A stretch of 64,000 nt of DNA from Monocercomonoides exilis PA203 (taxonomy: Eukaryota; Protista; Preaxostyla). Each line of letters starts with the position of its first letter. Within the stretch, counting starts at the first letter, position 1. Below, in pieces: positions 1,602 through 53,399 of this stretch. Location of the stretch: assembly GCA_001643675.2 (NCBI GenBank), contig LSRY02000048.1, positions 1 to 64,000 on the forward strand, read 5' to 3'. The notes under the pieces were generated by a model. The model was given only the letters and a program-made list of their open reading frames with translations, was not told the DNA's origin and ran no database searches. A program made the translations under genes and the position numbers.

Positions 1602-1920
1602 TTTACTTTTGAATCATTATTAAGAAAATGAATAAAATTGAATTTATTGTTTTTCTTTATTTTAATTTTTTAATGACAATGGTTTAATAACTTTTTATTG
1701 ACTTTGGCACTTTGGGTTAATACCATGATGAAATTTCGGAATAATTTTTCATTTATAAAAATTATTGAATAAATTTCTGAATAATTGATTTTTCATTTCA
1801 TTTTTCTTATCTGTGAAATCAACAAACTTGCATTTGAAAATTTCACTCAAAAATGACGCTTTGTCATTAATGAAATTGCATGTGCTTTTTTCCCATTAAA
1901 AATTCAAAAAAATCCCAATT

Positions 1921-5894
<3,974 letters not shown>

Positions 5895-6793: not shown

Positions 6794-7426
6794 CTGAAAA
6801 TATGTAAAATTAAAAATCTCGATCACAAAAGTGGTCACTAATTTTTCTTCGGATTTTGCAACAAACAGACATTAAAAGATGTGGGGAAGCTGTCTGCGTG
6901 GAAATCTGAGAAAAAATTAGTGACCACTTTTGTGATCGCCAGTCATTTAGAAAAACACTTTTATTAAGGTTCTCATCAGATTTGATCCGTTGAACGATCG
7001 GAACTATTATAAAACTGAAAATTGAAATGACTGGCGATCACAAAAGTGGTCACTAATTTTTTCTCAGATTTCCACGCAGACAGCTTCCCCACATCTTTTA
7101 ATGTCTGTTTGTTGCAAAATCCGAAGAAAAATTAGTGACCACTTTTGTGATCGAGATTTTTAATTTCACATATTTTCAGGAAAATGGAACGTATTTATAA
7201 TTTTTTGTATTTTATTGTGTCAAAAATAAATATGCATTAATTTTCATGTGGATATTTTTGTGAGCAAAGCGCAAAGCAATTAATGTGTTTGAACCATATT
7301 CTCATTTTATTTCTATTAAAAAAGCTGCAATAATAGCAACCAATACGATTTTTTTCATAAATAATTTGTCAGCCCGAGATGGAATATCAGTGAAAATGAA
7401 AGAATAATAATTCATCTTTCAGAAAT
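6794..7426. repeat. Right long inverted repeat containing a near-perfect hairpin (arms 6794-6948 and 7025-7179, 76-nt loop)
   Basis: Arms are reverse complements with one mismatch seen; the motif gatcacaaaagtggtcactaattttt occurs four times in alternating orientation. Confidence 0.95.
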
Positions 7427-8181
7427 ATGTCTGTAAGTGATTCTATTTTAATGAGTATTTCTTTGACTTTATTTTTTATTTCATCATGGTTAATTGGTTT
7501 TTTCTCCATTATTATTAATTCAATCTATCTTTTTTTTGATTCTCTATTTTGACTTATTATTTCTTTGAATATACTCTGAACTTATCTTCATTGATTTTTA
7601 AAATTTATTTATAAATTTATTCATCTGACTTTTGGATTTTATTTTTCATGTTTATCGTATATTGATAGCTATTTATCGTGACACAGCGTGCATTGAAGAT
7701 GGAGAAAAAAAGATGAAAGCAAATTAACTAAATAATGAAGAAATGAATTTATTTTTTAATTAAAAAAGATTTTTGGAGAATTAACAGTTCACTTGAAATG
7801 AAGTTTAATTTTTGTTGGATGAAGATGAAGAAAGAGAACATGACGATAGAGTTCAGAAGAATCAGAAGGAAATATATTTTCTGAATGAAATCATAGCAAA
7901 GAGAAAAGAAACAGGAGCAAAACCATTTGAAAATTGATTCGCACCAGCTAATTAGCATATTCAAAAGGTGAATGAATAAAAAATCAACTTCTTCGTTGGA
8001 AGCACTTCTGTAAATGGCAGAGGAAATGATGTGTTCTTCAGTGGAAGCAGCATAACCCAATCCCAATTTGAGAATTGTGGTTCAACAACTCAAACTAAAA
8101 GAGTGTAGAATCAAGGAACTGCTGACAATGAAACTTTCAATGGCTGGCTCCCCCTCATTGCCCAGAACAAAATAGTCTCAA

Positions 8182-11100: not shown

Positions 11101-14100
11101 CAACACAATTGACAAGAGTGTTTCTATTCTACTTCGCCGTGCCGAAAGCATCGCCTCCTCCTCTCATTCTGCCTTCGTCTTCCACTCTGTCGACTTTGTT
11201 GTGCTCAAAGTGACCCGCCTCTTCTCCTCTCGCGCCTTCGTCCTGGCTGCCTCCCTCGGCTTGTCTGGTGCTGAGCTCACTGCCATCTGGAGGCTGTTTG
11301 TGTTGTGTGTGTCTTCTGCGCATTCGCTCGTGCTGCTGCCAAATCAGTCGCTCCACACGCTGTTTATGGGGTGTGTCTACGTCGTCGCTGCCATCTTCGC
11401 ACAGACAGTGCTGTCTACATTGTTTGAGCAAGAGGTGGATGATGTTGATGAACTGATGGAGAAGGAAGAAGGAGATGATGTGATTATCACAAACAACAAA
11501 GACACACCAAGATGGGTGTATCAGCTGTGTGAGGGAGAGAAAGAGAAAGAAGAAAGGAAGGATCTGCTAAAGAAGAGGCAGCAGCAGCGGAAGGAGATGC
11601 GGAATTCGCAGCTGCTTTCGAATGGGGTTGTGTTTTCGCAGTGGTGTGAGGCCTTTGTGAGGTATTCGCTTGTTGGGCTGACAACAGACAGGATTCTGCA
11701 GCCACGTGCATTTCTGAGCAGTGTCAGTGCAGTGGATCCATCAAAGAGTTCAGTGGCTGAGTTGATGAAGCAGAAGAAGAAGGAAAAGAAGGAGATGGAG
11801 AAGAAACAGAAGATGATGACAATGTTGAATCAGAACAATACAATTTTCAGTGGAAATGGAGTGAGTTCATCTGATTCTCTGATGAATAGCAACATCAGTC
11901 GTGTCAGCAATGAAGCAGGTTTCAGAGAAAACAACAAAAAAGCGAATAAAAGCACAAAAAAGACAAATCCATCCATTCTGACGCTGTCACAGATCATCTC
12001 CACATACTGCAGATGCTTCCCTTCTGTCACAAACACATTGGAATCGAATCGATTCAATCAAAATGCAACTGACAGTTCTGAAAAAGCTAACAAAAGTGCT
12101 GTTTCTGTTGGCTCTGCCACTCCTCCTCTGACTCCAACATATTCTCCGCCTTCTTCTCCATCTCTCACTCCTTCAATGTCTTCTTCTTCGTTCTCTCCTT
12201 CCTCTTTTCCTTCCTCTCCTTCTTCCTCTTCCTCTTCTTCCTCTTCTTTTGGAATTCCAACAGCATCGCTTGCTTCTTCTCCTCTTCTTCCGTCTGTCAC
12301 ATCATCTTCCACTTCATCTGAACATTCCAATCAAATAAATCACCAACATCATTCATCATCATCATCTTCTTCTTCCTCCTCCTCTTCTTCCTCCTCCTCC
12401 TTTTTCCATTTCTCTTCTCTTCCTCTTTTCCTCCAGCCCCGTTTCGTTGCCCATTACATCAACACTCTCTTCATTCCTGAGCTCCATCGTGAATTGGACG
12501 GCATATCAGCTGCGTTTGAGGCAGAGCTGAGAGATTTCGAAAAGCAGAGAGCGAATTACGTGGCTGAACAGCAGCGAGTGAAGGACAAAGAGAAGTCAGC
12601 TCCAAAAGGCGCACTCAGAAATATGCAGGTCATTCCGAAATCTTTGCGTTCTTCTTCTTCTTCTTCCTCCTCCTCCTCTTCTGCTTCCTCTTCTTCCTCT
12701 TCATCATCATCTTCTTCTTCTCATGAGAATTCAACAGCACTTGTGCCTCTTTCACATCCATCGACCAATTATTACTACAGAATGAAGCAGAGGAACATTC
12801 CTCACCCTCAGCTGATGCCTCCTCCTGGTTCATCATCTTCTTCTGCTTCTTCTTCAACTTCTTCTGTTTCTTTTCGTTCTCGTTTATCTTCCTCTTCTTT
12901 AACTTCTTCTTCTTCTCATTTCTCCTCTCTTTCTTCCACCGCCTCTCGTCTTTTGGGCAAGTCTTCTTTGAATTCTCGTCTTTCCATTGTTCCCTCACAC
13001 TCCAGGCGCTCCAGCAAGCATCAAGCACATCCTCCACTTAGCCCTCTCACTCGCACACAGACACAGACACAGACACAGACACAGACACAAAAGATGAACA
13101 TCAACAACTTGCTGAGAAGTGCTAATGATGAGGTGAAAATGGAGAAAGAGAGAGAGAAAGAAAGAGAAAGAGAAAGAGAGAGAGAGAGAGAAGTGGTGGT
13201 GGAAGTGGAAGTGGAAGTGGAATGGGAATGGCTCAGTTGAATGAAGCGCCGAGTGTTCTGTCTCAAACAGTGAAGCAGATGAAGAAAGAGATGATTGAGA
13301 TAAGCAAAGGAGATGTTGTGAAAAGAGAAGAAGACATGATCGGTGAGGACGGAGACAAGGGAAAAATAACACCAACAAATTCAACAGAAATGACATCAGA
13401 TGCTTCTGCTCCTTCATCAGAAGCATCAACTGTGATGTCATCTTCAATAACTTCTTCTTCTGCTGCTTCTGCTGCTTCAAATACTTCTTTTCCTCCTGCA
13501 ACTTCATCATCCATTCCATCAAAGCAATTGCCTTCTCCCCGTTCTCCTTCAAAGAGAAGAAAGGGCATTCCATCTTCTTCCTCTTCCTCCTCCTCTCCTT
13601 CTCCTTCTCCTTCTCCTTCCTCTTCTCCCTCACCTTCACCCTATCCTTCCTCCACCCCCAGTTCCCCTCTGCCCCCTCATCCCTCATCTCCCCTTCGCCA
13701 TCAGCTGTCTGCCTCAGACATCGTCGAAGGGAAAAGGCAAGTGCATGCACCGAAGATGTTAGACCTCGACTTCCGAAAGCCACACAGGGGAAAGCCAAAA
13801 AGAGGGAAGAAGACGATTGGGAAAGAGAATTCATTGTTTGCAGCGAGAGAGGCGAGGGAAGAAGGAGAAGAGAGAGAGGAGAGGGAAGAAAGAGGAAGAA
13901 ATGGAATGGATAGCAATGGTGAAGGTGTAAGTGAAGGTGTATCATCAGATAGAGACAAGATGGATGAAAGTGACTCACTTGGATTTCTGAGTGAAGACGG
14001 AGAGTCTGCAAAGGAAGGGAAGAAAGAAGAAGAGGAAGAAGAGAATGAGAAGAAGAAAGAAGGAAATGAAAATGTAAATGACAATGAAGATGTTAACAAC

Positions 14101-17100
14101 ACAGTGAGTGATTCAAACAAAGTCAGTGAAGAACAACAAACTTTCACAAAAGAGGAAGAAGGAAGCTCAAATTCACTCAATCTTCAGTCTTCTTCTTCTA
14201 CTTCTGCTTCTTCTGCTTCTTCTTCCACCTCTGCATCGTCAAGTGCTGGCTTTCCAACTGCCTCTTTCCCTATATCAAATGCTCAAGCCAAGAATCCCTC
14301 TTCATCATCATCTTCTTCTTCTTATTCTTCTTCTGTTTCACTGCTGAGCATGCCATCAACTGCATTAGGAAGAGCACTCAAACGAAGCGGAGGGAGAAAA
14401 GCGCTAGCTGCCTTCAAGCGGACAGTTCGTATGAAGACACACACAGGCTCAAGAATTGCTCCACCCGAGTTCAAATCAGAAGTGCTGGGACTGACAAACA
14501 AGATGGGTGGAAGCAGCAATTATAACAGCAATAACAATAATAACAGCAAGAAGAAGAAGCTATTACGTGTGGGGATGTAGCAAGTGCCGCTGAATATTCC
14601 ACACGGAAGGCCGCCGAAGATGAAGAGGAAGCGGATAATTACTGCGATGGGGTTGAATCAGCAGGGGAAGAAGAGTGAAGGATGTGCAAATGCAAATGCA
14701 ACAGCGCAGAATACGAGGCGTTTGGAATCAACTGTTGTAACATTGGCGAGCAAGAGGATAGTTTTGAAACAAAGAGAAGGAGAAGGAAAAGGAAAAGGAG
14801 AGAGAAAAGGAAAAGGAGAAAGAGAAAGAGAAGGGAAGAATAATTTATGCGTTTAAAGAGCTTCTTCCAGATGAATAGGAGTTTGGAAGACAAAGAGGAG
14901 CAAAGCGGAGATAGAAAGCGAGCGTGAAAGGGAAAGGAAAAGCGAAAGGAAAAGCATTCCTATCAAAGACAAGTCCGACGATGAGTTCGTTTGATGTGCT
15001 GAGTGAGCTGCTTTCGAGAGAGCTGGAGCTGCTAGGTATGACAGAAGGCAGCATCGCCTTTGACTCTTTTAAGTCTGATATGAGTGAGAAAAGTGGAAGA
15101 AGCAGAAGTGACACCGATAAGAATGAATATGGCGAGGAAGTGGATGATGATGATGAGGAGGAGGAGGAGGAAGAAGACGTGGAGTGAGACAGGATTCTCA
15201 GTGCAAAGATATTTTTGACAAGTACACGGACCATTCGGCAGACACTGGAAAAGAGCAGATCTGTTTTTGAATATGACACCTCGAACACATGCAATTCGGT
15301 AAAAATGAGAGAAAACAGCTGAGTTGAAGCAACATTCAAAGCAGCTGAGATGAAAGAGAGGCAGAATAAGGAGGCACTTACGAAGATGAAGAAGAACATA
15401 CTGAAGCTGACACATGGAAGTATTATTCCTCTAATCAAGCCAGTCTTCCTTCTGCTGCCTTCAAATCTCGTTCAGGAAGAGGAAATCAAGGCAAAGACGC
15501 TCAAAAGAAAGATCTGGCCGAGAGGGAAAGGGAAGAACATGTACTATTTGTTCGAGATGAAGAGAGGAAAGAGTGAGTGAACGGAGCAGGTGCAGCAGAC
15601 ACTGAAGAAGCAGAAGAAGACAGTGAAGATGATGGCAATGACGATAGCGATGATAGTTACGTTAGCGGTGATGAAGACAGTTTGGATATAACACGATCTG
15701 CTGAAACATCAAATGCCGATGAAACATAAAAGACAACAGAAAGAGAAGAAGACTTAACTTCACGCCCTGCCCTGCGCTTCACTCCCAAGCAGCGAAAGAT
15801 GCTTTCATCGGCATCCCAAAATAGCAATCAGAAGAAGTCGCATGTCACTTTCTCACACACCTTAACCATCGTCTGCGGAGAGCTCAGTCCAACCCATCTG
15901 CAGTTCACCTTTCCTTCACCCAAGTATGCAAAGGAAAATGGAGAGAAAGAAGAAGACGAGAACTCAATTGGCTCAGAAGGCAGCAGAGAAGCCAGACAGC
16001 ACCCGCCAGAAGACACAGCAATCACAGCTTGGCGGCTGTTTCTATGTCACGAAGACATCTTGTCTTGTCTGCCATCAGAGCAGCACTCGGCAGAGCAACA
16101 CAGACACACCTCAGAGCAGCTGCAGCGAATGGGTTTGCAACGGTGTCTTCTTCTTCCTCCTCCTCCTCAGCTGGTCTGTCTAACCAGACAGGTTATGCAA
16201 ATATCAATGCCAATGGAAGTGATGGTGGAGGAGTGGATGACTTTGGGATTATCATTCTGTTTGGGAGGAAATGCAGACTGAAGACAGGGCTGGAGAAACT
16301 GTTTTGTGGTCGATGCAGCAGGTTGGGAAGAATGAAGGCGCTGCTTTGCTCCACTCACTCGGAAACGCGCTGTCTCATCTTTTCAACCAGCTTTGACCAC
16401 CTCAGCTCCAAAGTTCACAACCATCCTTCTTCGCATGCTGGTGAAACAGGGAAAGTATTGGCAAATGATGCGAACTCGTTTCTGAGCCTGTTGTGTGGAA
16501 CGAGGCTGTTCAGCTTGGGAGGAGAAGATACTGTGAGAGATGCACAACTGGTGGAGAACATGAGAAAGGAGATGAATGTGTGGAGAGGAGAAGGAAGGAC
16601 AGCTGTTGAAGGAGGGGACGAGGCAAGAGGCACAGTTGAGCTGTTCTGAGAAGAGAGGGGAATCTTCAGCACTATTCCTGATGTGCAGAACAAGATCAAT
16701 AGAAAGAATGATGAACATAATTTCTCTTTGAATGCAGTGGAAAGAGAGTCATATGCAATCAATGCGAATATTCTGCTTGACCCGCTTTTGTTTGCTTCGT
16801 CTGTCTTTTTCGAAGACCAACAACTTCTGCTGTCTGCCTCAGAAAATACAATTTTAGTTCCTCCTCAAAGAACTACATATGTCCCATCCATCGGAGAAAC
16901 TCTGCTCGAACTGACAAATCCATCTTTTCAGGTTGTTCCGCTGTGCATTGAGTATCCACAGAAAGGGGAGCAGCATTCGATTCTGCCTTCTTCTCTCGAG
17001 TTTTCATGAGCGCTTCTTGTCAACGTGTGTCCTCTCCATCTTTCTCATCCACTCACTTCTATCGTCCGCACTCTGCTTTCAAAGATGCTTTCAGTGTCTT

Positions 17101-17680
17101 TCACTTCATCTTCCGTGTTCTCCATCCCTTCTTTATTCACCTCCTTCATCACTTCTTTGAAAATTCTCAGTCCACATCATCATCCATCACAACACCTGCC
17201 ATCATCTCATTCTCCACGCAGCCCCTCGGACCTTCTGCCGCGTTGTCCAATCGCCTGCTGCTTTGTCTGCTGGCCACGCGCACTGCACTCACTGCTGTTG
17301 CAACCGCTGCTCACAGGCTGATGGTGAAGAAGGACTTGCTCCCCAAAATATCAGCCATATTCGAGACACACCATGTCCAGAAACCTTCTTCTTCTCCTTC
17401 GATGTTCATTTCTGCCTCTCTCATCCAGCGATTGGAGGTTGTTGGCGCTGCATTCGCACAAGCCACACCTTCCGCTTTTGCTTCTGTCCAGCAAACATCT
17501 GAGTCTCAGTCAACTTCATTGGCATCGAATATAACAACAGATGCACTGGACCTGAGTGGATCTTCAAATTCTGCTGCTGATGAAGCTAATACAACTTCTG
17601 TTGGCATGCGATAAATGCATAAGGAACAGCAAGTGGAAGAAGAGGAGAACTTCCCTATCAGATAAAGAAAGACTAATTCT
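8182..17680 (+). pseudogene. Very large Ser/Gln/Glu-rich host-type gene interrupted by in-frame stops and frameshifts
   Basis: ORFs 8927-11032 and 11201-13240 share a frame across one TAA; 13222-14580/14584, 14924/15350 and 16029/16683/17025 are likewise joined across stop codons; a frameshift lies at the (GA)n run near 13180; no named domain. Confidence 0.65.
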
Positions 17681-18429
17681 CAGCAATTCTTCCACATCAG
17701 CTTCAGACAAGCGTCACCTCCTCTCAGTTACCTCTCTCTTCTCTTTCGCAATCTCCCTCTCCTTTTCCCTCTTCTCCGTCATTCACATCAAAAAATTCTC
17801 CATCCTTAGTTTTCCTCCCTTTTCCTTCGAATCTCTCTCTCCCACTTCAGAGTCGTGAACGGGTATCTTTTACTTTTTCTTTTCTCCCCCATCTGGAGCA
17901 ATTCCTGAGAATTCTACGATGCGAAGTCTATTTTTTTCAAAATTCTTTCTTTTTTCAAAGGATATTCTTTCATCTTCACCTGCAACTGTCCTCCTTGCTC
18001 TGCTTTTGTTACAGCTACCATCTGATTCATCATCGTAGTCATCATCATCATCTTCTTCTTCTTATCGTATTTCTTCATTTTTTACATCTTCATAAGGAAA
18101 AACAGCGGAAAAAAAAAGAATAGTATTTATGAAGAAATCATCTTCTTCAAAAAATGAAAAGAAAATTATTTGGTGAATGAAGAGAATGAAGATAAAGAGA
18201 AAGATAAATTTATTAAAAACAGAATATTATGAATGGAATTTGGATTTAAAAAAATTGAAGAGATTTTAAAAGAAAAAAGGATAATATGGAAAAGGAGAAA
18301 AGTTGGAAGAGAAGACTTCAACGAGCAGTAAAAGAACGCTAAAACGGAGAAATAATCAATTGTTATTTATCTTTATCATTCCGTCTGCTGCTTCTTTTTC
18401 ATGGGTGTCCTAAAGCACAGCAACAAACA

Positions 18430-19083
18430 TCAGGGAAGGGATTTAAAAGGTGATGCTTCGAAGAGCTTATCCGTGGTTGGGAAACCACTTGGAAGTGCCA
18501 GGGAGTGTGCAGTGGACGGGCTGATCTGTTGCAGGTGAACAAGCAGCTGTCGACATACACACAGTTGTTCACCTCTGAGCTGGTCGAAAAAAATGGTGAT
18601 GAAGAAGGAGTACATCATGCTGAAGAAGCTTATTGACTTTTTTAAACAAAAAGATGAAAATGGCACGCTGAATCATTTAGTTGCCACATTCGTGGTCATG
18701 AGATGATCGAGGGAGCAGCTGGAACCATCGTCGAACAGGAGCACAGGCGAGGCTGCACTTTGGGTGAAGAGGTTGGCGTGGCATAGAAAGAGGGAGGGAG
18801 CGAGAAGATGAAGAACAGTACAGGTGAGGTGGAGGGAATGGACAGATATGTTGGAAAGGCGAAGGGTGCCTTGGCAAGAACAAACGAGAGGAAAGTTGAG
18901 GTCGATATGATGTTCGGGGAAGAATAAGAGGGAGGAGGACACAGCAAGGTATCCGTCGAGGAAGGAGAAGAGGGAAGAGTAAGCAGATGCGAAGGAGGAG
19001 GGGAAGGAGAACTGGCAGTTGGTGAGGATACAGGTGTTGAGAAAGGCGACAACAGCAGAGCATCTGAGGAGGAAGACATCCAA
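18430..19083 (-). pseudogene. Fragment of a host-type gene of unknown family
   Basis: More GC-rich coding-like island with minus ORFs 18673-19083 and 18430-18666. Confidence 0.35.
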
Positions 19084-19567
19084 ATGTATAAAAAAGACGA
19101 GGAAGAGGATAGAAGACAGAGAGAGAGAGAGAGAAAGATGAAAAAGAGCAAGTGAAGATTTTCGTTTAATGGAAGCATTTTTTGCGCAAAAAATGAAAAT
19201 TCACAAATTGTATTGTTCAATTTTTTTAATAGTGATTTTTTTTTTATTATCATCTGTCACTTCTTTTGACGAATAAATCAACAAAAGTTCTTTTGTGCAT
19301 TATTTGTTTTAAAATCGAAATAAACTGCAAACTGTGAATTTCTTGTGAAATATCTTGCATAACTATCATATTTTTGTTTTTGTATTTTTTCTAATTGTTT
19401 GTTTTCAACAAATTTTTTGGATCTTCAACATCCATTTAAAATTTTCTTTTCAATAACATTATTTAACAATTCTTCATTTAAGAAATTGATTTATTGAGTA
19501 TTGAAACAATCATTATCATGCTTCTCAAACAAGATAACTTATGTTTTATAATGTTTATTGAATTTTC

Positions 19568-19602
<35 letters not shown>

Positions 19603-19784
19603 AAATTGTTTTTATTTTATGATATTTGTAATAAAATAAATTGGAAACAAATTAAAAACAACAAATAATTAATAATGATAATATTTTAAGCTATATTTTT
19701 ATCAAAATATTAACAAAAATTTTCTAATAAACCCCACCCTTAATAAAAAATCATAATGATCAAACTTCGTAATTTTTTATGATA

Positions 19785-20836
19785 TCAAAAAAAATCACCC
19801 ATATCATTAATATCAGGAATTTCTTCATTTTCATCAACTTCATCATCATCAATTTCCAGTTCAAATTCATCTTCAGATTGAAAATTTATTACTTTTTCGA
19901 TGAATTCTCCGTATGAAAGAAAACCTGATCTTTTCACAATGAACGTTGCAAGCACTCCAGGAATGAACCGCTCTCTCACTCCATATCTTGGAAAAAAAGA
20001 TCGCAAATGTGCCCACATTCCTTCGATAGTGTTCGTATTGGCTTTTGTAACGGGATCAACGTAATGACGTTTGTGGCAGACGGTTTGGTGTGTGTAACCA
20101 ATTTCTCCTAAGCAAGTGTATGCTTTCCACTCGTCGCTGATTATTGTTGTTCCTTCTTTGATTCTATTTTTTATTATAGGGATTAATGTCTCTTTTTTTC
20201 GATTAGGCACAATGACAACGAATTTTTTTCCTAATTCTTCTTCGCCTTTTCGTTCGACCGCTCCAAATATCCACATCAATTTTTTCTGCTTTCCTAATTC
20301 AAAAAATAGTTATATTCACAACAAATAAATTAATATTTATGAAAACAAAATATATATTCGATGTAAAAACCTTTTTTGTATTTCCGTCTCCTCCATGCTG
20401 CTTCATCAATTTCCACTATTTTGCCTTCCCCTCCAATTTTTTCATTTCTGTAATTTAAGTAATTTAACGCTGTCGACCTTGCAACACTTGTCCAGTATCC
20501 AATCGTCATTTGAGATACATTTAACATCATGCCAATTTGCCAATCTTTGATTTCAAGCCAAAACATCAAAAGAATCATCATCACAGTGGAAATAGGCAAT
20601 TTTGAAGACTCCAGAGTTGTATTTTTAAAGCAGGAAACACTTTTCTTGCACTTTGGGCACTTCGGGAATCTTGAATGTCCCCTTCCTTTACAGATATATT
20701 TGACTTTTTTGCAGTGTTGACAAACTGCAAAAACCTTAGGTAAATATTGTTGTATCCATTTCCAAGATGATTCTTCAGATGAAAATGTTTCATACAGCGC
20801 ATGACATTCCTTTTTGAAAGGTTTTTTCCAAGACAT
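19785..20836 (-). CDS. Merlin/IS1016 (ISXO2-like) DDE transposase, 324 aa after removing intron 20294-20370
   Basis: N-terminal CxxC...CxxC zinc ribbon, IGGEGKIVEIDEA, WIFGAVER, IISDEWKAY, HQTVCH, NTNTIEGMW; the 77-nt GT-AG intron joins the two ORFs in frame (KKG|KQKKLMWIFG). Confidence 0.9.
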
Positions 20837-29353: not shown

Positions 29354-31500
29354 CAGTCTGTCCCAAAAAAATGTTGATCTGTCCTTTTTTAATGTTGAGC
29401 ATCACGCAATAAATAAAAAATAAATTTCCCACATTCGCCTTTCGTCATAATTAACATTTTATTAGCAAGGGGTTAAACACTGTTTCAAGTACATGAACAA
29501 GATTTTTGTGCTTTTATGTGTTTTTCTTTGAACAAATCAGTGGATGAATGATTGCAATCAATTATTTATTCAGCTTTAAAACTTTTGTTGTTTTTTAAGC
29601 TATATTGTGTATCAATAACCAACTCACTTGTTTTTGAGTAATGTTTTGATTCATTTGAATGAAAATTTCAATCTTACAAAATGTTAATTCAGGTAAACCT
29701 TTTGAATATATTATTCACTAATAATGAATAAAGCATTCAGAAATCTCATGAAAAATTGATAGCTGTGCAATTATTTTTATTACTGAATGATAATTTGAAT
29801 CTTTGTTTTTTTCAAACAATTTTCAAAACTATTAATTATTCTTTTTTTAAATGAACAGTTCATTATTTTTATTCTTTTTGATTGATAGCCTTTAATGACA
29901 TAACGATCTGTGAATGTTTAAGTATTTTTCACTTCCTTTTGGAAAAAAAAAGATTATAAAGAACCAACAAGCCAATTTACTTTGTTATTGGCAAAGATCG
30001 TTGATTAAAATAAAAGAAATGAAAACAAAATGATGTGAGATTAAAGAACAATAAATATAAACTCAAATTAAATTATTCTATCAGACATAAATGAAGCATG
30101 AATAAATAAGTGCAACGTTAAGATCATAGGTCTTTCTTTTCCAAAACCAGTGGCCATATTTCATTCTCAACATTAGCAATTGTTCTTCGCACTTCTCTTG
30201 CTGTAATATCTTTGAAGGTGTCAACAAGCACGGCAATAAAATGGTTTTCTCCTTTCCAGATGCAAGAGCTTTCTTCAGCTCTTTTTTTCCAATAACCAAA
30301 AACGTTTTCTATTGGATTTAGAATAGGTGAATATGCGGCATTGTATAGTACATGATGACCGGCTTCCATAATTATTGCGTCTGTGTTAAGATGATGAATT
30401 GAAGCGTTGTCCATCACAATAACCGATGATCCATGGACTTTTATTGAAAGCAAAAATCTTTTGATGTATGCCTCAAAGACTTCATGATTAATTGATCCTC
30501 TAATAACTTCGGAATATCCCATTCCTGATTGAGAGATGGATGTGATGGCAGTAAGTGACTGATGAACTGGTGGAGGAGGAATGAGAACCTTCTCTCCAAC
30601 TGGGGACCATCCGTATTTTCTGACGCATTCCACATTCCAAGATGTTTCATCTATATAAAATATCATTGCACCATCCATTTGATATTCGTTGAGTTTTTCG
30701 ATGAATTTAATACGGAGAATTTTGTTTTCTTCTGAATTAGCTGCGGATTCTCTCTTTGTTATCCTTTTGAAGGAAAAAATAGGATATTTTTGGGTATCTT
30801 TATTTTTTTCTGTAAGAATACGGTATATTGTTGATTTCCCAATCGGGCTTCCATGATTTGATAATTCAGAAGCAATTTTCCTCACTGTATTCAAAGGATT
30901 CTGCTTCATTTTTTCCCGAACAATTGATTGATATTGTTCGTTTTCGACCTTTTTCTTTCTCCCTTTTTGATGTAATGGAAGTGTAATGTTTATTCCCGCC
31001 TTTAATTTCGATAAGTACCTAGCTGCAGTAATTGTTGTTAATGTGCACTCATTCGCGTACCATGTTTCGCTCTTCTCCTGACCATGGATTTGAAAAAGAT
31101 TAGATAATTTCCTTCTTTTCGCATCAGTTGCATTAATATAAGGATTTTTTATTTTTTGATTCTCATGAACTCCAACATTTCTAAGATCTTCTATTTTCTT
31201 TCTTCTTTCTTCCTCTGCTCTCATTGCTGCTCTCATTTTTATAGTTTGATGAATTCGTTCTTCCAAAGGATGAACAGCAGGTAAAGAAACTGCACTAACT
31301 TTGAATTCTGAAATTGTTGGAACTGATCCTATTATTTTCTTTTTCTTTTCAACTGTTCTAGCATCCAATAATTGAATATTTTCCATATTGTGAAAATGTT
31401 AATTATGACGAAAGGCGAATGTGGGAAATTAAATTTTTATTTATTGCGGGATGCTCAACATTAAAAAAAGGACAGATCAACATTTTTTTGGGACAGACTG
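29354..31500 (-). mobile_element. Tc1/IS630-type element, 2147 bp, TIRs of 107-108 bp, TA target duplication
   Basis: TA|CAGTCTGTCCC...(29354-29460) and (31393-31500)...GGGACAGACTG|TA; TIRs nearly identical. Confidence 0.95.
30124..31386 (-). CDS. Tc1/IS630-family DDE transposase, intact 420 aa (DD33E spacing)
   Basis: HTH-like TVRKIASEL..IGKSTIYRIL; YIDET, VMDNASIH, YSPILNPIENVFG. Confidence 0.95.
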   Translation of the reverse strand: MENIQLLDARTVEKKKKIIGSVPTISEFKVSAVSLPAVHPLEERIHQTIKMRAAMRAEEERRKKIEDLRNVGVHENQKIKNPYINATDAKRRKLSNLFQIHGQEKSETWYANECTLTTITAARYLSKLKAGINITLPLHQKGRKKKVENEQYQSIVREKMKQNPLNTVRKIASELSNHGSPIGKSTIYRILTEKNKDTQKYPIFSFKRITKRESAANSEENKILRIKFIEKLNEYQMDGAMIFYIDETSWNVECVRKYGWSPVGEKVLIPPPPVHQSLTAITSISQSGMGYSEVIRGSINHEVFEAYIKRFLLSIKVHGSSVIVMDNASIHHLNTDAIIMEAGHHVLYNAAYSPILNPIENVFGYWKKRAEESSCIWKGENHFIAVLVDTFKDITAREVRRTIANVENEIWPLVLEKKDL

Positions 31501-40402: not shown

Positions 40403-43400
40403 ATGTCTTTTTCAAAACCTCAATCAACTCTTAATTCACGATCAAAAATTCTTTGGAAAGAAATTGAACGCATCGGGGGAGATGACGTTGATTCATTGCT
40501 CGTCTATCTCTTTTACAACTTCAGGCAATCATCTTTTGTTATTTACGATTTGCTGAAGTTTATGAATTGTTTGGTTTTTTATTTTTTTGTATTGTGTTTA
40601 GAATATTATTTTTTCTCTCGATTTTTTTTTCATTAATATTTGTTAATTATTTATTTTTTTGAAACAGAATATCACACAAAGCTGCTGGAAGACCTGTCTG
40701 TGGCTTCCAACAACGCTCAGTTGCACACTCAGACAACAATGCTGCAGGCGCTGTCCCGCAACTCATCATTATCCGATTTACATGACTATGGATATGATGT
40801 CACAGAAGGAAAATTTAGTTACGAGAAACAAACACTGAAGAAGAATCAAGGATTAATCATTCCGCCTCAAAAACCTCACATTCCGTCTTGCAAAAGTGGT
40901 TTGAATTTTATTATATTTTTTTGTCAAATAATTTTCTCTGTTTGTTTAGGTTTGAATGAACAGGACTGGGAAAAGGGCAACAACTGGATGTTGGCCCATT
41001 CAACTGAAGCTTCAACTTCGCTTCAATCAGCAAAGAAAAAGCAGCGAGCGGAGCCAGATTACGCAAGATTTATTGATGAAGCAGCGTGGGAAGATGAAAT
41101 AATAACGGAAAATTCTTCTTCAATCAAAAAACAATCTTCTTCTTCTTCTTTTTCATCAAAACAAAATAAAAAAACAAATATAGTTTCAGAAAAAAATTCT
41201 CCTTCTTCAAATACTTCTTCTTCTCAAGCTGTTGATGCACCTATCAGTTCTCCAATAAGGAGAGAAAGGGGCTCGACAAAAATCAAAATGAAAATTAGAA
41301 TAACAAACGTCACTCTTCTCCATCTCCAATTCCTATTCACAAACTATTCAAACAAAAAACTTTTTCTTCACAAATATCAATTACAAAAAATTGAAAGAAA
41401 AAATAAATTCTTCATCATTTCAGAATGATAATGTGTTTGTGGCGACCAATTGGTCGATTATGCCACTTCACCCACATTAATTCCACCTCAAGCATTTCAA
41501 ACCCTCTTTTTCTCATTTTCAAAAAACAATGACACTTCAACAGTTCAACAACAAAGCATTCAATCTTCAAATAATGAAATATCAATTCAAAACAATTCTT
41601 CAAATAATATTTCAAAAAAGAATGCTAAAGAAAATTCAACAAAAAATCATTCTAATTTTCAATCTTCTTCAAATACATTAATTACTTCGAAAACATTATC
41701 ACAAACAGTAAAAGGATTGCCAAACTTAGGCAACATTTGCTATTTGGCATCTCTTCTTCAATGTTTCTCTTCAATAACAATACAAAAGCCATCTTTATTC
41801 AAAAAACTAACAGCTTTAAAGAACACATCATCGCGTGTTGTTCTGGTATGTCAACAATTGGCTAAAGATGGAACGGCAGTGCGTTCATGGGTCCCATCTC
41901 TTATTGACAAATGGGAAAATTTCTGCAACTATGGAATCAGACAGCAGCAAAACGTGGCTGAGGCATTTGACAATCTTCACCATCTTCTTCAAAAAGATGA
42001 GTTGATAAACAAGGACACCTTCAATCCTGTTTTAATCACTCATCACAAATGCCAAAAATGCCAACAAATCACATCACACTTCATTGAATTTTGTGGCAAT
42101 ATTGTTATCAATTCTTCATCAACGCAACATGGATTATCTTCTCTCTTTGCAACTGAAGTTTTGGATGGAAAGAACACAGTTTATTGCAACAATTGTAAAG
42201 AGAAATGCTATTCTTCAAGATGGGAGGAAAATGCTTCATTTCCAGATGTGCTAGCCCTCCGTCACGAATGCACTGAAACTTCTTGCTCTGTACCTTCAAA
42301 AACCTTCGTCATGGAAACCGATAGAGTGAATCAGCGTTCGTTTTGCAAAGGATTTTCAAATGATAATTTTCAACATCTCCTGAAGAACTATAAAGAAGTG
42401 TATTTTTATCATTTTGTTGGGCAAATTCTTCACAAACAGTTGGATCAACAAAACGGACATTACATCGCAATTGTGAAAAGAAAAAGTGGAATCAATAGTT
42501 TTTGGAGTATTTGCAATGATGAAAGTGTTTCTGAATTCGATAGTGACAAATGGAGTTCTTCATGGAATAATCTTCACTCACAAGGTTTCACTCCTTCGCT
42601 ATCATTCTACATTAAAGAAAACTCACTATCTACGCATCCAACTATTCAATTTGGTGGTTCCTCTATTTCTTCCTCCTCTTCTCAATCTTTAAATATCAAC
42701 AACACAAACACAGATACAACTCCCCCATCATCGTTCATCACACCACCTCCTCGAACAGCTTCCATTCCACAACTTTCTTCATCAATAACAACTGACTTTG
42801 GATTGGAAGCTTTGAAAGAAAGAAGAAAGAAAACGGGCATCTTTTCTCCGAATGAAAAGAGATTAATCTTCAAGCCCAAGACAAAATTATGGAAAGAGTT
42901 TTCCGAAGAAACAAACATCAAAGTTTCTCTGTCACATTTCTACAAACTCACAGCCAACTTTTCCAAAGCTAAAAGGCGCACAGATCTCTGTGGCATGTGT
43001 GAGAAGTTGGACTATCTGGAAAATAAATTGAAGTCATCACAAAACAAAAATGGACTTTCTTCTGCCGAATTTCATACACTCAAACTTCTTCGACAACATC
43101 GACTAGTTGCAGAAATGCAACGAAAACATTATCAATCAACTGTTGATAATCTGAAAGAGGGAGAAGCAGTCTTCGTCTTCGACTTCAAAGAGAAATGGAA
43201 ACTCCCCATCAGAAAGAACCAACTTCAACAAGAATTTTTCAATTATCAACCGGTTTCTCAATTCACTGTCATTTCACTTCAAAAAATTAATAATCAACAA
43301 ATAAAACGAACATTCAACTTCTTCTCCGACTGCCTCTCAAATGATCACAGATTTGTTATTGAGTGTCTGGAATCTGTGATCAAGAGACACTTCTTCTCAG

Positions 43401-44097
43401 ACACTCACACTTTTAAGTTCTTCTGCGATTCGGATCCACACAACCGAAATCGCTTCCTTTTTCACTTCATCCTTTCAAAACAATCCAAACTTCTCAAAAA
43501 GAAAAACACTCAACTCAACTTCTTCGCTGAGCACCATGGAAAAAATATCTGTGATAGTGAATTTGGTGCGTTAGTAAATGCAATCGACAACAATCTTTCA
43601 ACAGAACACATCACCACACTTCATGATTTGATCAACTTCTTCGAAAACAACATGAACACTTCGACATCAGCTTCTTCAACTTCTCGATCAAACAACTTCT
43701 CAACATCATCATCAAACACTTCATTATCTTCAACATCTGTCAATAACTTTGAGCATGAGAGGTACTTTTGAGAATATGTACCATCTCAACAAATCTCATG
43801 GCCGTCATTGTCAGTCCCTCACATGAAGGACTACTTATATTTTGAGCGCAAGGGCTCATTTGTCTGTGCATCTGCTGTTGGATATCTTCCTCAACGCTCT
43901 CTGGTTGCCCTCGAATCTTCGACAATGAAAGAAAAAGTCCAAAGATCAAGAAAGTCATTTCTCTCTGATATCACATCATCTAACTCTTCTCCTCTTTCTC
44001 AATCTTCTCAAAATCTTCTTTCAAGGAGATTTGAGCTTCTTCTTGACTTTTTTTTTTTTACGAATTTCAAAATTGTTCTTTTGGTGTACCCTATTAA
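40403..44097 (+). pseudogene. USP-containing Sola-like DDD transposase, copy 2
   Basis: One uninterrupted 773-aa ORF (41450-43771) holds GLPNLGNICYLASLLQC, GHYIA, WSICNDESV, TDLCGMC, DFKE, CDSDPH and HHGKNICDSEFG; 5' exons with introns ending ~40667 and at ~40899-40949; indels near 41290-41445; in-frame TGA at 43769. Confidence 0.9.
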
Positions 44098-46228
44098 GAA
44101 ACTAGTTGTTGTGTATGCTCAGCTGGCACTCTGTAGGAAGATTGCTGGACATGACTGTTCGTATTTGATATTGCAGCTTTCGGGCTGCTTTATCCGGACC
44201 TGGAAACGACGAACAGCCTCCCAGGTGCACAATAGTTAGAATCCGATTGTTTTCTTGTGGTTTTTGTCCCTATATTGTCCCTATAATAAAATTGGTTATT
44301 GTCCCGCATATATTTGTATTTATAGAGATTCATTAATAGAGAGAGTTGTGAGGGAATTCATTGATCTTTGGGTTAAGGTTTTTGGAAGGGAGAGTTGTTG
44401 AGAGTGTGAAATGTTGATTTATGAACACAATTAAAACCGGATATAATTACATCGAATATAATCAACATCGTTTGAAGTCACATTTTTCCATGCACAAACA
44501 TTTTTGTCCAAATTTTCATTCATTTTCCATCACACATTGTCACAGGGCTGAAAATATATAATCACAATTTTTATTATTATAGGTGCTTTTTTCAATGAAA
44601 TATCGATTTTTTGATCAAAATTTTCAATTTTTTAATTTTTCAAAATTATGTTTAAAAAAGTCTAAATAATGTGTATTAATAAAAAAATTGATTTCGCAAG
44701 TGAAAAATGCGTTTTAATGAAAAAATTTTCAAAAAATAAAAGTTTCACCCAAATTTAATTAATTAATTAATTAATTTTAATAATTTTCTGTGATAAACAG
44801 CATCGTATATTATCACAATCGGATAAAGTCACAAAAAGTTGTGCAAAAACAGATGTGATTATATCCAGAATAGACTGTATTCGTCATTTTCATACGTTTC
44901 AGCCACTTCAGATACAATAATCCAAAACCGTCTTCCTCTGTTATTCTCGCTACTGATGAAAAATATTTCTGCAAATCATCTGAAGCATCTGATGGGTCAA
45001 TTGCAGACACAGATGTTAAGGATAATTTTTTATCTTCTTCTCTTTTCTACTCTTTGTTAGTCGTGTCTGTATGAATCGAGTCTGGAATCGATGTACTGCT
45101 CCAGTGAAGTAAATGAAGTTGAAATGTTCAGCAAACATTATGATAAATAATATAGGAAGAAGAAAAGAAGGAAAGAAAATGCTTCAACAAATGCAAAAGA
45201 AAATACAGCCACAAGTTGCAAAAGTTGTGAAGATGAAGAGATCTGAAATACTGCAGAATTTGACACATCTTCAGCAAACGTCAACAGGATGCAGAAGTTT
45301 AACCGACAGAAGAAAAACAAAAAGAACAGAGATGGAAAGAGATGAAGTGTTTCAGATTGAGATAAATATAAAAGCTACATTTGCAAGGTCATTGGCTAAA
45401 GATACAATTTTTCTGATGGAGACAAAGAGAACATATCATGAAGATTTCTTCAAGAAGAAGAGATAGATACCAAAAAGAAACAGAAAATTATTATATATTT
45501 GATTAATCTATAAATAACGCAAAGGAAAATATTAAATATTTGAAGTCAAAGAAGAAGAAAGAGACGTCATGAAAATAATGCAGATGAGGCTGAAAGAGAT
45601 AACAGAAAAAAGGAAAAAGAAAACGATGAAGTTTTGAAAGAAATAAGAAATAAATTAGTTAAATTGAGAAAGAAATTATATTGGATAATAAAAAAAGAGA
45701 GAAGTGATCCAGCAGGATAGATTTCGCTGGAAATGGAAAAAGAGCTTTATGAAAGGCAGCATCTGAAAAAAAAATCTGATCAAGAGGATTTGCTGTGCTG
45801 GAGATAGCAGGAATTACACTCGATGGAGAAGTGATCAGTGAGCAAATGAAAGGCATTCTAGCTGTGAAAGTCGAGACTATCAACGTTAAACATAAAAAGA
45901 ACCTGGAGCTGAAGGAGTCATGCAGCAAGAGAGAGAAAGGGGGAATATTCAAGCAGTCAACCAGATTTGAACAATAACAAAGAAAATGTGAACATGCGAA
46001 TTCCTGAACGAATTGAACGTTTGAGACTTTGGAATGAGTAAAATCAATTTTTCATTTTCAAAACGTGAAACATAAACTGGTTTTTCTTGAATCAGTTGGT
46101 TCGAATATGATTTAAAAAGAATTTATTTTTTCTATTCTTTTTTCATTTGAATGTTGTTCTCTTTGCTGATAAACGGATCGATCTTTCTATGAAAGATATT
46201 TTAAACATAAAAGACAGAAAACACACAA

Positions 46229-49200
46229 ATGTCACCAAAACAATACACTTTGAGCAAGTGGTCCAGAAAGCTGTGGGAATATGCCTCCTCAATTTCTGGA
46301 GATTTCACTTTCGAGTTATTTGAGTATTTCTTTTTTTCATTTCGAAAAATGAAGGAAATCAAAGACTCGTTATATAAAAAATCAAATGGTGTGTGCAGCA
46401 TTTCATAAATAATTGAAATTTTATTGTTTGACCTTTTTTTATTTATGCATGTGCTATTTTACAGATCAACTTGATGGAGTGATGAATTCTTTGAGTTCAT
46501 TATTTCCAAAGCTTCAGAATAATTTGCAAGTCAAATTACTTAAAAATCTGAGCACTTACTGTTCTTTTTCTCAATTGAGAGATTACCATTTTGATATTAC
46601 ACAGGGACAACACAATTTCGCGAACGATGGATCACTTTTTCATTATTTGGATAATGAAAGTGAAAGTGAAGATAGAAAGTGCAAAAAATGGAGTTATCTG
46701 GATAATGAATCACTTGCAAAAGTAAATATGTTTTTGTTTGAAAACACATATAAATCCTCAGAGCTCCATAAAATAAAAAATAAATTCAAAAATATTTCGT
46801 TGACTCTGAAGAAATGTGTTTTTTTATTTTCGGTTATTTATTTTGTTATTTATTTTTCAAAAAAAATCTTGACAATGATGATGGTTTTTTCTTTTTGAGC
46901 GAAAATCATCTTTTCTCAGGTATTGATGGCCAAAAAAATGAATATTTTGATGAAGACATTCAAAATTTCGATGAATCATCTCATGCATCTGTTCCACATA
47001 TCCAACAATTGATTATTAATGAGCAGAAGATGTTTGAATTATATCCATATTCTACATCAAAACAAGTTGGGTTGAAAAATTTAGGAAATAGCTGTTTTTT
47101 CGATGCAGCTTTACAAATGTTTGCATCAATGAATAAATTCCATTCGAGGGAATTTCAGATAGAAACGAAAAATATTCTTTCTTCAACAGTCATCAATATT
47201 TGCAGATCAATAGTTGATCAACAGGAGAATATTGAATCTTACTGGTATGAAGAGTTCTACGAAAAATGGCACAATGAAAATTATATTTTAAAAATGGAGG
47301 AGCACGAATCGGATGATGCAATAGAATGGTTACTGAAAATAATACGAAAACAATCTCCAACTGCAATGAACAATTTGGGTTGTCATTCAACAGATAATAT
47401 CATTTGCCAAATGTGTGGATATGAATCTTTTTAAATGCCACAAAAAGTTGATACTATCATTCTGCAATGTCATTCAATTGAACATTCGTTGAACGAGTTT
47501 CAAATCCTTCAATTTCAAAGAAAGAGCGAAGAATTGAGCTGTCCATTGCGCAGATCGATATGTGGAGTGATTCAGCAAACTCAATATGAAAACAACTCAG
47601 ATTTCTTGTTATTTCAACTTGAGAATATCTTTATTTCAACAAATGAACAAAACAAAAAAGCCACTGGATTGAATAGATCATTATGGATGATTGAAATTTC
47701 AAAAAACACGCAATACACTGATCAAGATTCAAATCAGAAAGAGAAATTCAATCTTCTTTCCATAATTTTGTTCAATCCAACTGTCCATCATTACATTTGT
47801 GTAACTATATCAGATATTGAACAAATCGAAAACAGCAATGAATGTAATTTTCGTTGGAAAATTTGCAACAACGAAAATGTGGAAGTGGTTAATGATCTTG
47901 AAATTAAAAGCAAATATGAAGAGTTGTATTCAAACGGACGGAAAACAAGTTTTCAATTCATGTACAAAGTTCATTTATTCAAATGAAGACTTAAAGACAA
48001 TCTGTTAATCTCGGTTCTTCTTTTTATCATTTCAGCAATGATTCTAATAATTCAAACAATGAACATAAAAACAATATAAATAATTCTTTGTTTTGTGGAG
48101 TAGTAAACAGAACAACTTATTAAACGAAAAAACAACTTCACAATGAATTTGTGCAAAAACCATGAATTAATATGTCCCACTCATATTTCTGCAAATTTGC
48201 TCAATGTATCAACGCAAAACCTAGAAACAAAACTGACTTATGCTCCATTTGCGAAAGAGCTAGATATTTACGGAAAATATCTCAAAACAGACAATTCAGA
48301 AATCAGGATAATGAAGGGCTGCAATCCATAACAGAGCCCAAAAAATAGGCAAAATGCCAAAAACAATCATCAGTTGACTCAAAAAGCAAACTTTGAAAAC
48401 ATAGATCTTCTTTTGCTGCAAGACTTTAAAGAGAATTGGCAGCTTATGCTTTCAAGACAAGAAATCAGTAAAGCTTTTACACAAAAAAACAAGTGTCTGA
48501 CATTTGCAATATTTTATACACAAAACAAAATGATTCACTTAACAAAACATGTCATCACTTTATTTCGGACTGTTTATCTCATGATTTAAGATACGCCATT
48601 GAATGCTTGAACGTTGTTATCGAAAACATATATCAGAATTACACACACTCCAATCAACTCTGACAGTTTTTTCAGACTCTGGTCCTCACTTTAGGAATAA
48701 ATTTTTTTTTAGTAATTTTCTTAGTGACAGTCAAAATCGACAACAATTTTCATCGATATTTGTAAAGTTTTTCCCGGAGCAGCATGGTAAATCGGAATGC
48801 GATAGAGAGTTTGGATCAGTTTCTTCCAAATTATCAACAACATGTCTGGAAACTGGAAGAAATGCTTAATCATTTTGTGCCTTTTTTAAACAAATTTTTG
48901 ATTCTTCGATTCAAAGCACCATAAACGAGAAAATGAACAGACAGTTTCACTTGTGTGTTTCACTTTTTTTCATTTTATAACGTTGAAGTTATATATATAT
49001 ATATATTTTGGCTTCAGATACACTCCGTCAAATAAAAAAACTTGGAAATGGCTGAAAATTCCATCTATGATGATTTATTTATCTTTCAAAAGACAAAACG
49101 TTCATATATACACGGCATCTCATTCACAATTGTTGCAAGACAAATGGAAAATCATCAGTGATTGCGAAAGTGTCCAAGAAAAAATAGTTGGAGAAAGATA

Positions 49201-49290
49201 GTGGCTTACAGGAACAAATGCAGATCATTCAAACATGTTCATCAAAGACCTAACATTATCTCGAATAAATCAAAGAATGTCAATAAAAAA
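46229..49290 (+). pseudogene. USP-containing Sola-like transposase, copy 3 (distant subfamily, heavily decayed)
   Basis: MSPKQYTLSKWSRKLW N-terminus, GLKNLGNSCFFDAALQ, HHYIC, WKICNNENV, LLQDFKENW, FSDSGPHFRN, FFPEQHGKSECDREFG. Confidence 0.85.
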
Positions 49291-52352: not shown

Positions 52353-53399
52353 TTTTTCTTCGGTTGTCCAATCAGAAAATATGGGTGATAATTTTTGAAA
52401 TCATATTTTTTCATTCATAAATTTCGGTGGAAAAATATTTTTGAATATCAATAAAAAAAACTGAAAAGTGAAAAGGATTATTGAATACATTTTAATCTTT
52501 GATTCGGAATAACCATTAGTTATTAGAAACAATCATTATGTTTCTTTTCTTTTGCAAAAATAATTTTCTTTCGAAAAATTTAAAATCTTTGAGAAATCAT
52601 CACCCCGAAAAAATATATGATTTAAAAAATAATCACCCATATTAAATCTATAATTCTCAATTCAACATTGTTAACAATCGAAAATGGAGTTCTGCATGTT
52701 GATAACTGCACAATGATGGCACTTTCATCCAAAAAGCCTTCATTTCTGTTTTGTTCAAAAATGATTTCGTTGAAAATGAGAAGGATGCACATATTGAGGA
52801 TACATCAAATATCAATGAAATTGGACAACACAAAGAAGTTTCATTTTATTAGGTTGTTGCTGATTAAGTGAAGCTATCTGAAAAATTAATCATTGTGATA
52901 CAAAATTCTGTATCTGTTCAAAAATTAAAATTGATATTATATCGTTCAATAATATCTCAAGAAAAACAAAAGGAGTTTCTTTTATTTATTTGTTTCATTC
53001 TACTTCACCTTCTTCATTTTTTTTATTATCAATTTTTATTTTCTCAGAAATAAGCAAAAAGAAGAAAAAACGTTCTCAATGTTGATGATATATTTGTTTT
53101 TCTAAAAAAAATGCTGAAAAAGAGTATGAATGAAATAAGAAACAGGTGATTGAAGAAGAATGAAGTTAATGAATAAAACAACATTTAATTTGGAAAATAA
53201 ATTGAGAGTATCAAAATCGATAAATATTGATAAGAAGAGAAAAAAAATGAAGATGAGGAAAAAGAATAAGAAGAATAATTTAGAGAAAAATACGAATAGG
53301 AGGATGTAAATGCCAATGAAAATCATTTTCAAGGCTTTCCTATTTGCCCCCTCCTCAACGTCACTGTCTGAAGAAACTTCACCTATCACAACCAATTTT

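Follow-up and report, generated by a model that had tools for sequence, protein, structure and literature searches.

A ubiquitin-specific protease domain inside the transposase of large Sola2 DNA transposons of Monocercomonoides exilis

Why should a single stop-free frame of a protist genome encode a deubiquitinase together with a DNA transposase, and does such a frame belong to a transposon? The question is raised by a locus of Monocercomonoides exilis PA203 (Preaxostyla), lying in the first 64 kb of contig C45 (LSRY02000048.1, positions 1 to 64,000; hereafter called the window). There, in AT-rich eukaryotic DNA, 773 codons without a stop run along the forward strand from 41450 to 43771. A preliminary description, based on the letters alone, had read this open reading frame (ORF) as a complete ubiquitin-specific protease (USP, peptidase C19) joined to a transposase resembling those of Sola2 elements, an arrangement said to occur three times in the window. 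We report that the frame is derived from a family of approximately 20-kb Sola2 cut-and-paste DNA transposons, in which the USP is located inside the transposase, preceded by the N-terminal region conserved in Sola2 and followed by the part formed by a zinc motif and the DDD core.

Judging from sequence and predicted structure, the N-terminal half of the ORF is a complete C19/USP catalytic domain with the fingers-palm-thumb fold (41714-42625, forward strand). The Pfam family UCH (PF00443) matched residues 89-367 with an E-value of 1.1e-12 and 48.5 bits, the cut-off being 23.9 bits. Every motif that had been named was found, from the Cys box GLPNLGNICY, with Cys97 at 41738-41740, through the QQN box (QQQNVAEAF) and the zinc ribbon made of the CxxC pairs C201/C204 and C246/C249, to the GHYIA box, with His337 at 42458-42460, and the WSICND box, with N356/D357 at 42515-42520. 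C97, H337 and N356/D357 line up with the catalytic residues of USP15, known from solved structures. An AlphaFold 2 (AF2) model of the domain, built from 15 element copies, reached a pLDDT of 77.5 and a pTM of 0.79. When this model was used in a Foldseek search, 457 PDB matches were obtained at E < 0.001, and the top 50 listed were USPs throughout; the best match had an E-value of 9.8e-18, with TM-scores of 0.61-0.65, and USP46, USP12, USP35, USP2, USP1 and USP21 were found at E-values of 1e-17 to 1e-15.

A word-based search for the USP returned M. exilis proteins only. The best genome-wide matches to Pfam UCH lie in giant stop-free frames of 3,200-10,690 codons (for instance C18:971861-973780, C69:1943494-1944951, C2:942835-944391 and C36:2171498-2173009); these frames apparently encode host USPs of great size that have no relation to the transposon copies.

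The C-terminal half can be assigned, by homology and by its modeled RNase H fold, to the Sola2-type DDD transposases (core at 42857-43669, forward strand). It begins with the DxCxxC...H motif (TDLCGMC...H; D512, C514, C517 and H550) and continues with the DDD triad: D578 in DFKE (43181-43183), D660 in CDSDPH (43427-43429) and D702 in HGKNICD (43553-43555). A Pfam scan gave no family for residues 470-740, and a profile search of the core against PDB sequences found nothing. Comparison by phmmer with 1.8 billion representative sequences revealed homologues in 605 clusters, of which 208 had E-values below 1e-10. One of the homologues, detected at an E-value of 1.1e-15, was PPL_04538 of Heterostelium album PN500 (P0109 in our set), whose sequence Bao and Jurka 2013 (PMC3627910) list in their supplementary file 3 as Sola2_PPa-1; Sola2_DFa-2 from the same file has the same series of motifs as the M. 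exilis core. In an alignment of 30 diverse homologues, the D, C, C and H of DxCxxC...H, the D of DFKE, the D and H of DxGxHF, and HGK..D were invariant, and D578, D660 and D702 were preserved in all of these sequences as well as in six M. exilis lineages. The AF2 model of the core (pLDDT 88) shows the order beta1-beta2-beta3-alpha1-beta4-alpha2-beta5-alpha3, with the aspartates at the expected places. A structural search with VIA-align placed it closest to the integrase cores of a retrovirus, SIV (Z 11.8, rmsd 2.8, 133 residues aligned), followed by the catalytic domains of Mos1/Metnase (Z 11.1) and by IstA (Z 9.9). The two models, which the preliminary description had proposed as a check on the protease triad and on the transposase fold, agree with its assignment of both halves.

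A separate observation concerns DUF7869 (PF25273). Animal proteins of this family were the nearest to the core in language-model features of the ESM Atlas (score 0.95), and one Sola2-type homologue matched DUF7869 weakly; in Pfam, this family may represent the core of a related transposase.

The statement that both domains share one frame was correct; however, the frame lacks an ATG and is only part of a larger, intron-bearing gene. N-terminal exons with short in-frame introns were located upstream, at 40403-41248 on the forward strand, by tblastn with residues 1-232 of the annotated protein MONOS_11334. This region resembles the N-termini of Sola2_DFa-2/PPa-1 and of P0008, a metagenomic relative devoid of USP and bearing a chromodomain in its place; MONOS_11334 and P0008 are both Sola2 transposases that start with the conserved N-terminal region. 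The exons are followed by a Ser-rich linker and by the stops TGA/TAA at 41426-41431. At the other end, the TGA at 43769-43771 is read through as sense in most other copies, and comparison with these shows that the frame of the transposase C-terminus continues beyond it, from 43772 to about 44029-44239. Self-comparison of the window delimited this copy, designated copy 2, to 40403-44422 (forward strand), the only stretch that it has in common with other copies; it is a 4-kb internal fragment, with neither flanking inverted repeats nor termini. Copy 2 is a truncated, stop-bearing relic, in which the USP and transposase parts happen to remain open. An Rfam scan of the whole window gave no match.

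The other two occurrences of this architecture in the window, at 3120-5567 and 47069-48833, are on the forward strand as well. Copy 1 (1-19800) is a large Sola2 element cut on the left by the contig end, with its gene at about 1921-6220. Its USP-transposase frame (3120-5567) is 71% identical to that of copy 2 in amino acids, and contains a TAA at 3468, just past the Cys box, and a TGA at 5565. Copy 3 (46229-49290) is a decayed member of a distant lineage, C, with USP fragments at 47069-47968, transposase fragments at 48085-48833, and frameshifts.

Copies 1 and 2 carry a TGA at the identical codon (5565-5567 and 43769-43771, respectively), which is sense in most copies and removes the last ~110-150 residues of the transposase. 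The stop could have been inherited by two dead copies from a common ancestor, or it could define a short form that is functional. A ciliate-type genetic code was considered for the in-frame stops and rejected, as such stops are infrequent and not the same from copy to copy, the majority of copies being open.

The fusion is not restricted to the window. Genome matches, counted as lower bounds in answer to the copy count that had been called for, amount to at least 142 for the transposase core and at least 125 for the USP. More than 100 copies, representing at least five diverged lineages, hold both domains in one frame, and over 50 stop-free frames of 1,028-1,429 codons span both. Such a frame, with Cys box, His box, DFKE and HGKxxCD, was present in every one of the 20 copies fetched. 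Between lineage B and the main lineage A, the transposases are 51-59% and the USPs 35% identical; lineage C includes intact relatives of copy 3 with a single frame of 704-731 codons, and frames of 992 and 916 codons represent lineages D and E. PF00443 was recognized in lineages B-E with 30-61 bits (E-values of 1e-7 to 1e-16), always above threshold. The proteins MONOS_5520, MONOS_11334, MONOS_7069 and MONOS_12024, which database matching showed to be 92-96% identical to the ORF, and other MONOS_ entries annotated at NCBI as 'uncharacterized protein', are members of this element family.

With regard to their distribution, many copies lie less than 30 kb from contig ends (C10, C50, C76, C78, C91, C24, C87, C23, C93, C82, C56 and the start of C45), which may mean either that the family prefers subtelomeres or that the assembly broke at repeats. 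MONOS_18616 (P0009) maps to C13, a contig that also bears lineage E.

That these genes form a true multi-copy transposon family, as had been proposed, is demonstrated by terminal inverted repeats (TIRs), 4-bp target-site duplications (TSDs) and MITEs (miniature inverted-repeat transposable elements). The repeated unit of copy 1 ends at 19800-19805, a breakpoint of homology common to at least six copies, and the 4 bp next to this terminus (19801-19804) are ATAT. The right TIR (19773-19800, reverse strand) reads 5'-GGGTGATTTTTTTTGATATCAT... inwards. The last 440 nt of copy 1 are the inverted counterpart of a left end found at L035:2295, 8.7 kb upstream of the transposase core of that copy; inverted matches to the right TIR were found also at the left end of L034 and at the ends of subfamily B elements (L025 and L026). 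The outermost ~30 nt (GGGTGATTTTTTTTGATATCAT...) are 87-97% conserved at five element ends from lineages A and B. Across the genome, the ~30-bp TIR gave 1,171 forward and 1,169 reverse matches (2,340 in total), and its reversed control gave none. On three contigs, gene copies lie between inverted TIRs that are 19.5-22 kb from each other: C1:1577369/1596866 encloses L001, C9:353449/375400 encloses L004, and C7:1637506/1658657 encloses the copy at C7:1645714-1647723. Most of the other pairs are ~235 nt apart and represent MITEs, so the ~2,340 termini correspond to roughly 1,100 elements, the majority of which are MITEs. These ~256-bp MITEs have nothing but the ~30-bp termini in common with the USP-Sola2 elements. 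One of them, of 256 bp and with the family TIRs, is present in the window at 52383-52638 and is flanked by ATAT at 52379-52382 and 52639-52642. Another (L024:8246-8501) has TTAT on both sides, and its removal together with one TTAT restores a perfect (ATTT)n tract. ATAT precedes each of seven other termini that were read. Short TIRs and a 4-bp AT-rich duplication were reported previously for Sola2 (Bao and Jurka 2013, PMC3627910). With many near-identical copies, dozens of long intact frames and ~1,100 MITEs, the family looks abundant and recently active.

How the two halves of the gene have evolved bears on the role of the protease. In all lineages aligned, the columns of the protease triad (Cys, His and Asn/Asp), of the four cysteines of the zinc ribbon and of the DDD residues are invariant, and the invariance of the protease residues, together with that of the QQN box, persists although the USPs of the lineages share only 20-40% identity. 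Among six sequences, pairwise identities of USP and transposase are correlated (r = 0.94), and the sequences group alike by either domain, as fits a single ancient fusion after which the domains diverged together. Within lineage A, USPs are 56-84% and transposases 90-98% identical in amino acids, and the segment directly before the USP is even more divergent than the USP half. The dN/dS analysis that had been suggested for the USP part was performed by the Nei-Gojobori method over 21 copies of this lineage; it gave dN 0.18, dS 0.98 and omega 0.20 for the USP segment, and dN 0.016, dS 0.43 and omega 0.04 for the transposase core. The USP is therefore constrained, yet its dN is about ten times that of the transposase. 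These data demonstrate long-term purifying selection on the USP catalytic residues.

What could a transposase gain from such a domain? We propose that the USP would act as a ubiquitin-directed isopeptidase, which the transposase itself would bring to the transposon ends, and that its activity would help the element to propagate. Most likely, ubiquitin would be stripped from the transposase or the transpososome, preventing their removal by the proteasome. Alternatively, the USP might act on ubiquitinated chromatin or on repair factors at the sites of excision and integration. Deubiquitinase activity is suggested by the invariance of catalytic and zinc residues over deep divergence, by the omega of 0.20 and by a predicted complex with ubiquitin. 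This complex was modeled with the ubiquitin of M. exilis itself (L038:1495-1722) and scored 0.69, against 0.09 for the best control, a result that may reflect memory of solved USP-ubiquitin structures; the mark of 0.69 is reached by 51 of 78 solved complexes and by 2 of 108 mismatched pairs. In three runs, contacts agreed to at least 97%, and the pLDDT of the partner was at least 85. In the predicted pose, residues 68-76, the tail of ubiquitin, touch the Cys and His boxes (model residues 12-18 and 254-258), and those of the Ile44 patch rest on the fingers. Taken as a whole, the interpretation that the gene is the transposase of a ~20-kb Sola2 family, with an inserted USP that is an active deubiquitinase aiding the element, appears to us reasonably probable.

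Several points weigh against this interpretation. No UCH domain was found in any of 20 long Sola2-type proteins from other sources, including BLNAU_20614 of Blattamonas nauphoetae and the Heterostelium protein, which indicates that Sola2 transposition does not generally need a USP. (When other organisms were searched for USP-Sola2 fusions by means of a full-length profile, A4, only Heterostelium paralogues were retrieved, so that the search was uninformative.) The 4-bp AT-rich TSD was read on two MITEs and on no full-length element. Values of omega calculated among genomic copies mix selection in active lineages with neutral decay of dead ones. Moreover, the two halves differ two-fold in synonymous divergence (0.98 for USP and 0.43 for transposase), and copies 1 and 2 are 79% identical in the DNA of the USP half and 93.5% in that of the transposase half; as the difference in dS indicates, the halves may have had partly separate histories, owing to recombination or gene conversion between copies. 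Finally, the modeled complex may only echo solved structures of USPs with ubiquitin.

A bolder version of the proposal would make the USP essential for transposition, countering a ubiquitin-based restriction of the transposase or transpososome by the host, with this conflict driving the faster divergence of the USP half and of the segment preceding it. We put it forward only tentatively, and rather doubt it. If true, it would provide the first mechanistic answer to the question why proteases specific for ubiquitin or SUMO have been gained repeatedly by unrelated DNA transposons, among them MULE, CACTA, Ginger, Helitron, Helentron, IS5-like and Sola2 elements.

A different role, which we regard as unlikely, is that of a processing protease acting in cis: the USP would cleave the long precursor of the transposase after a Gly-Gly that closely follows the protease domain, and thereby free the N-terminal part, with the DNA-binding region and the USP, from the catalytic part. 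Such a Gly-Gly is indeed invariant in lineages A and B, where each of the 15 copies aligned has it 12-13 residues past the USP fold; it is kept amid differing neighbors (QFGG, SKGG, LKGG and IRGG), in a segment that is predicted to be disordered and hence accessible. Viral deubiquitinases often double as polyprotein proteases (PMC9741609), and the papain-like protease (PLpro) of coronaviruses, which has a USP fold, cuts at LXGG. However, no Gly-Gly occurs there in lineages C, D and E, although their catalytic residues are kept, and the tail is not docked into the active site in the model (pLDDT <50). Canonical USPs need the body of ubiquitin for activity, and in the predicted complex ubiquitin adopts its usual pose. 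As to its position, the Gly-Gly corresponds to residues 322-323 of alignment A2 (a 42413-42418-type position in the window), and it recalls both the tail of ubiquitin and the sites of PLpro.

It might also be supposed that the USP is a captured piece of the host genome, carried as passenger cargo, or a non-catalytic module that merely binds ubiquitin. DNA transposons often capture host fragments, Sola2 elements elsewhere do without a USP, and the USP evolves much faster than its partner, as the amino acid identities in lineage A indicate. On the other hand, a neutral passenger would have lost the features seen here, namely an omega of 0.20, catalytic and zinc residues that are invariant down to 20-25% identity between lineages, continuity with the reading frame of the surrounding transposase in over 50 long open frames, and co-divergence with the transposase. 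We see rather little chance for this explanation. That the genes are an expanded or domesticated host family with a transposase-derived domain is most improbable: members appear at NCBI under plain gene annotations ('uncharacterized protein MONOS_...') and many of them have long intact frames, but the copies exceed 100 in number and stops and truncations are found in many of them, gene copies are bracketed by conserved TIRs, ~1,100 MITEs share these termini along with 4-bp target duplications, and the DDD triad is invariant.

Returning to the transposon itself, its internal organization is complex. In copy 1, an inverted repeat encloses the gene, with a left arm at 1001-1611 and a right arm at 6790-7457, which contains nested hairpins; the arms pair with 91% identity over 622 nt. 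These ~600-bp repeats were considered as the element termini and rejected, because more than 10 copies share sequence that lies beyond them, they differ between sublineages, no target duplication is visible, and the real termini are ~8-14 kb away. Internal inverted repeats around the gene cassette range from 200 to more than 1,280 bp, and their arms are up to 100% identical. In L017 and L018, which are otherwise similar, the cassette has opposite orientations relative to the outer repeat ends. In L021-L023 (on C41, C30 and C36), the cassette was lost by deletion between ~340-bp direct repeats. These three 'empty sites' were considered as excision footprints, and this was rejected since they are deletions between the 340-bp direct repeats within the inverted-repeat structure. 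The internal structure suggests that the cassette segment is invertible or unstable.

Two further parts of the copy-1-type element are worth mentioning. A 4.3-kb module at 14180-18514, GC-richer (44-47% GC) and lying 2.5-9 kb downstream of the transposase gene, is 82-94% conserved in more than 12 elements of different sublineages; its ORFs gave no match to Pfam, and the module may represent a second gene, rich in introns. The region 8927-14580 contains three long Ser-rich, low-complexity ORFs of 701, 679 and 452 codons (GC 44-46%), and some copies lack a part of this region. RB_B was the sole match there, and a weak one; this region may be captured host sequence. Other transposases are found nearby: a fragment of an IS1595/Merlin-type DDE transposase (19785-20279, reverse strand, E 7e-19) abuts the right end of the Sola2 element, and a 420-codon ORF of the Tc1/mariner type, with DDE_3 and helix-turn-helix (HTH) domains, is located at 30124-31386 on the reverse strand (E 6.5e-21).

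The family extends Sola2 to Preaxostyla. In the M. exilis genome paper, in which neither Sola nor this family is mentioned, repeats were estimated at 46% of the genome, mostly unclassified, with 35% listed as 'unclassified repeats' (PMC8767320); the elements described here account for a part of the latter, and several annotated MONOS_ 'uncharacterized proteins' are fragments of their transposase. Many DNA transposon superfamilies have independently gained proteases specific for ubiquitin-like proteins (Ulp1, OTU, VTD and, in one case, C19), and the M. exilis family offers an unusually clean test case. Its USP is canonical and easily assayed, is part of the transposase rather than a separate gene, and has kept its catalytic residues through deep diversification; furthermore, the family is abundant in a culturable protist with a good genome.

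As regards novelty, full-text literature searches found no USP-Sola fusion. The preliminary description had stated that transposon-borne proteases are mostly Ulp1 or OTU and not USP. Both of these are indeed known, but a C19 peptidase in a transposase is not new: XP_001314237.1 of Trichomonas vaginalis, combining transposase_11 (IS4/IS5-like DDE) with peptidase C19, received one sentence in Bao, Kapitonov and Jurka 2010 (PMC2836005), where reference is made to Gladyshev and Arkhipova 2009. In that protein, as in M. exilis, a C19/USP domain is joined to a DNA transposase of a metamonad protist; however, its transposase belongs to another superfamily (pfam01609), unrelated in sequence, and the two are likened here by description only. 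The same authors suggested widespread participation of the ubiquitin pathway in transposition (PMC2836005).

Ulp1 (C48) domains are known from Mutator-like, CACTA and Ginger1 transposases, OTU domains from Ginger1 and Helitrons (PMC2836005; PMC9741609), and the VTD domains of Helentrons are proven deubiquitinases (PMC9741609). All of these resemble the present case in having a cysteine protease specific for ubiquitin or ubiquitin-like proteins within, or fused to, the mobility protein. They differ in protease family and fold and in transposon superfamily, and the protease is C-terminal in them, whereas in M. exilis it lies in the middle of the transposase. With the cellular USPs that are nearest to it in structure (USP46, USP12, USP35, USP2, USP1 and USP21), the domain has in common the fold, the Cys/His/Asn-Asp triad, the QQ(D/N) box, the four-cysteine zinc ribbon and, as predicted, the canonical pose of ubiquitin. 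Unlike them, it is embedded in a transposase and has no host-type accessory domains; identity to them is only 15-20%, and their ranking by E-value (1e-17 to 1e-15) does not discriminate between subfamilies.

The closest relatives of the element as a whole are the Sola2 transposons of dictyostelids (Sola2-Fanzor DFa and PPa, PMC3627910). Their DDD transposase is homologous and has the N-terminal region and the motifs (DxCxxC..H, DFKE, DxGxHF and HGKxxCD) found in M. exilis; their TIRs are short, their TSDs are 4 bp long and AT-rich, and they are likewise large, 10-15 kb compared with ~20 kb in M. exilis. No Fanzor/TnpB-like gene was recognized in the part of the M. exilis element seen, and its cassette, in contrast to described Sola2 elements, is flanked by long internal inverted repeats. 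Described Sola2 transposases contain no protease or deubiquitinase domain, whereas the M. exilis enzyme has a USP of ~310 residues inside it. Thus, protease-transposase fusions were already known, and what is new here is the pairing of a USP with a Sola2 transposase and the host group for Sola2, the internal position of the protease being unusual.

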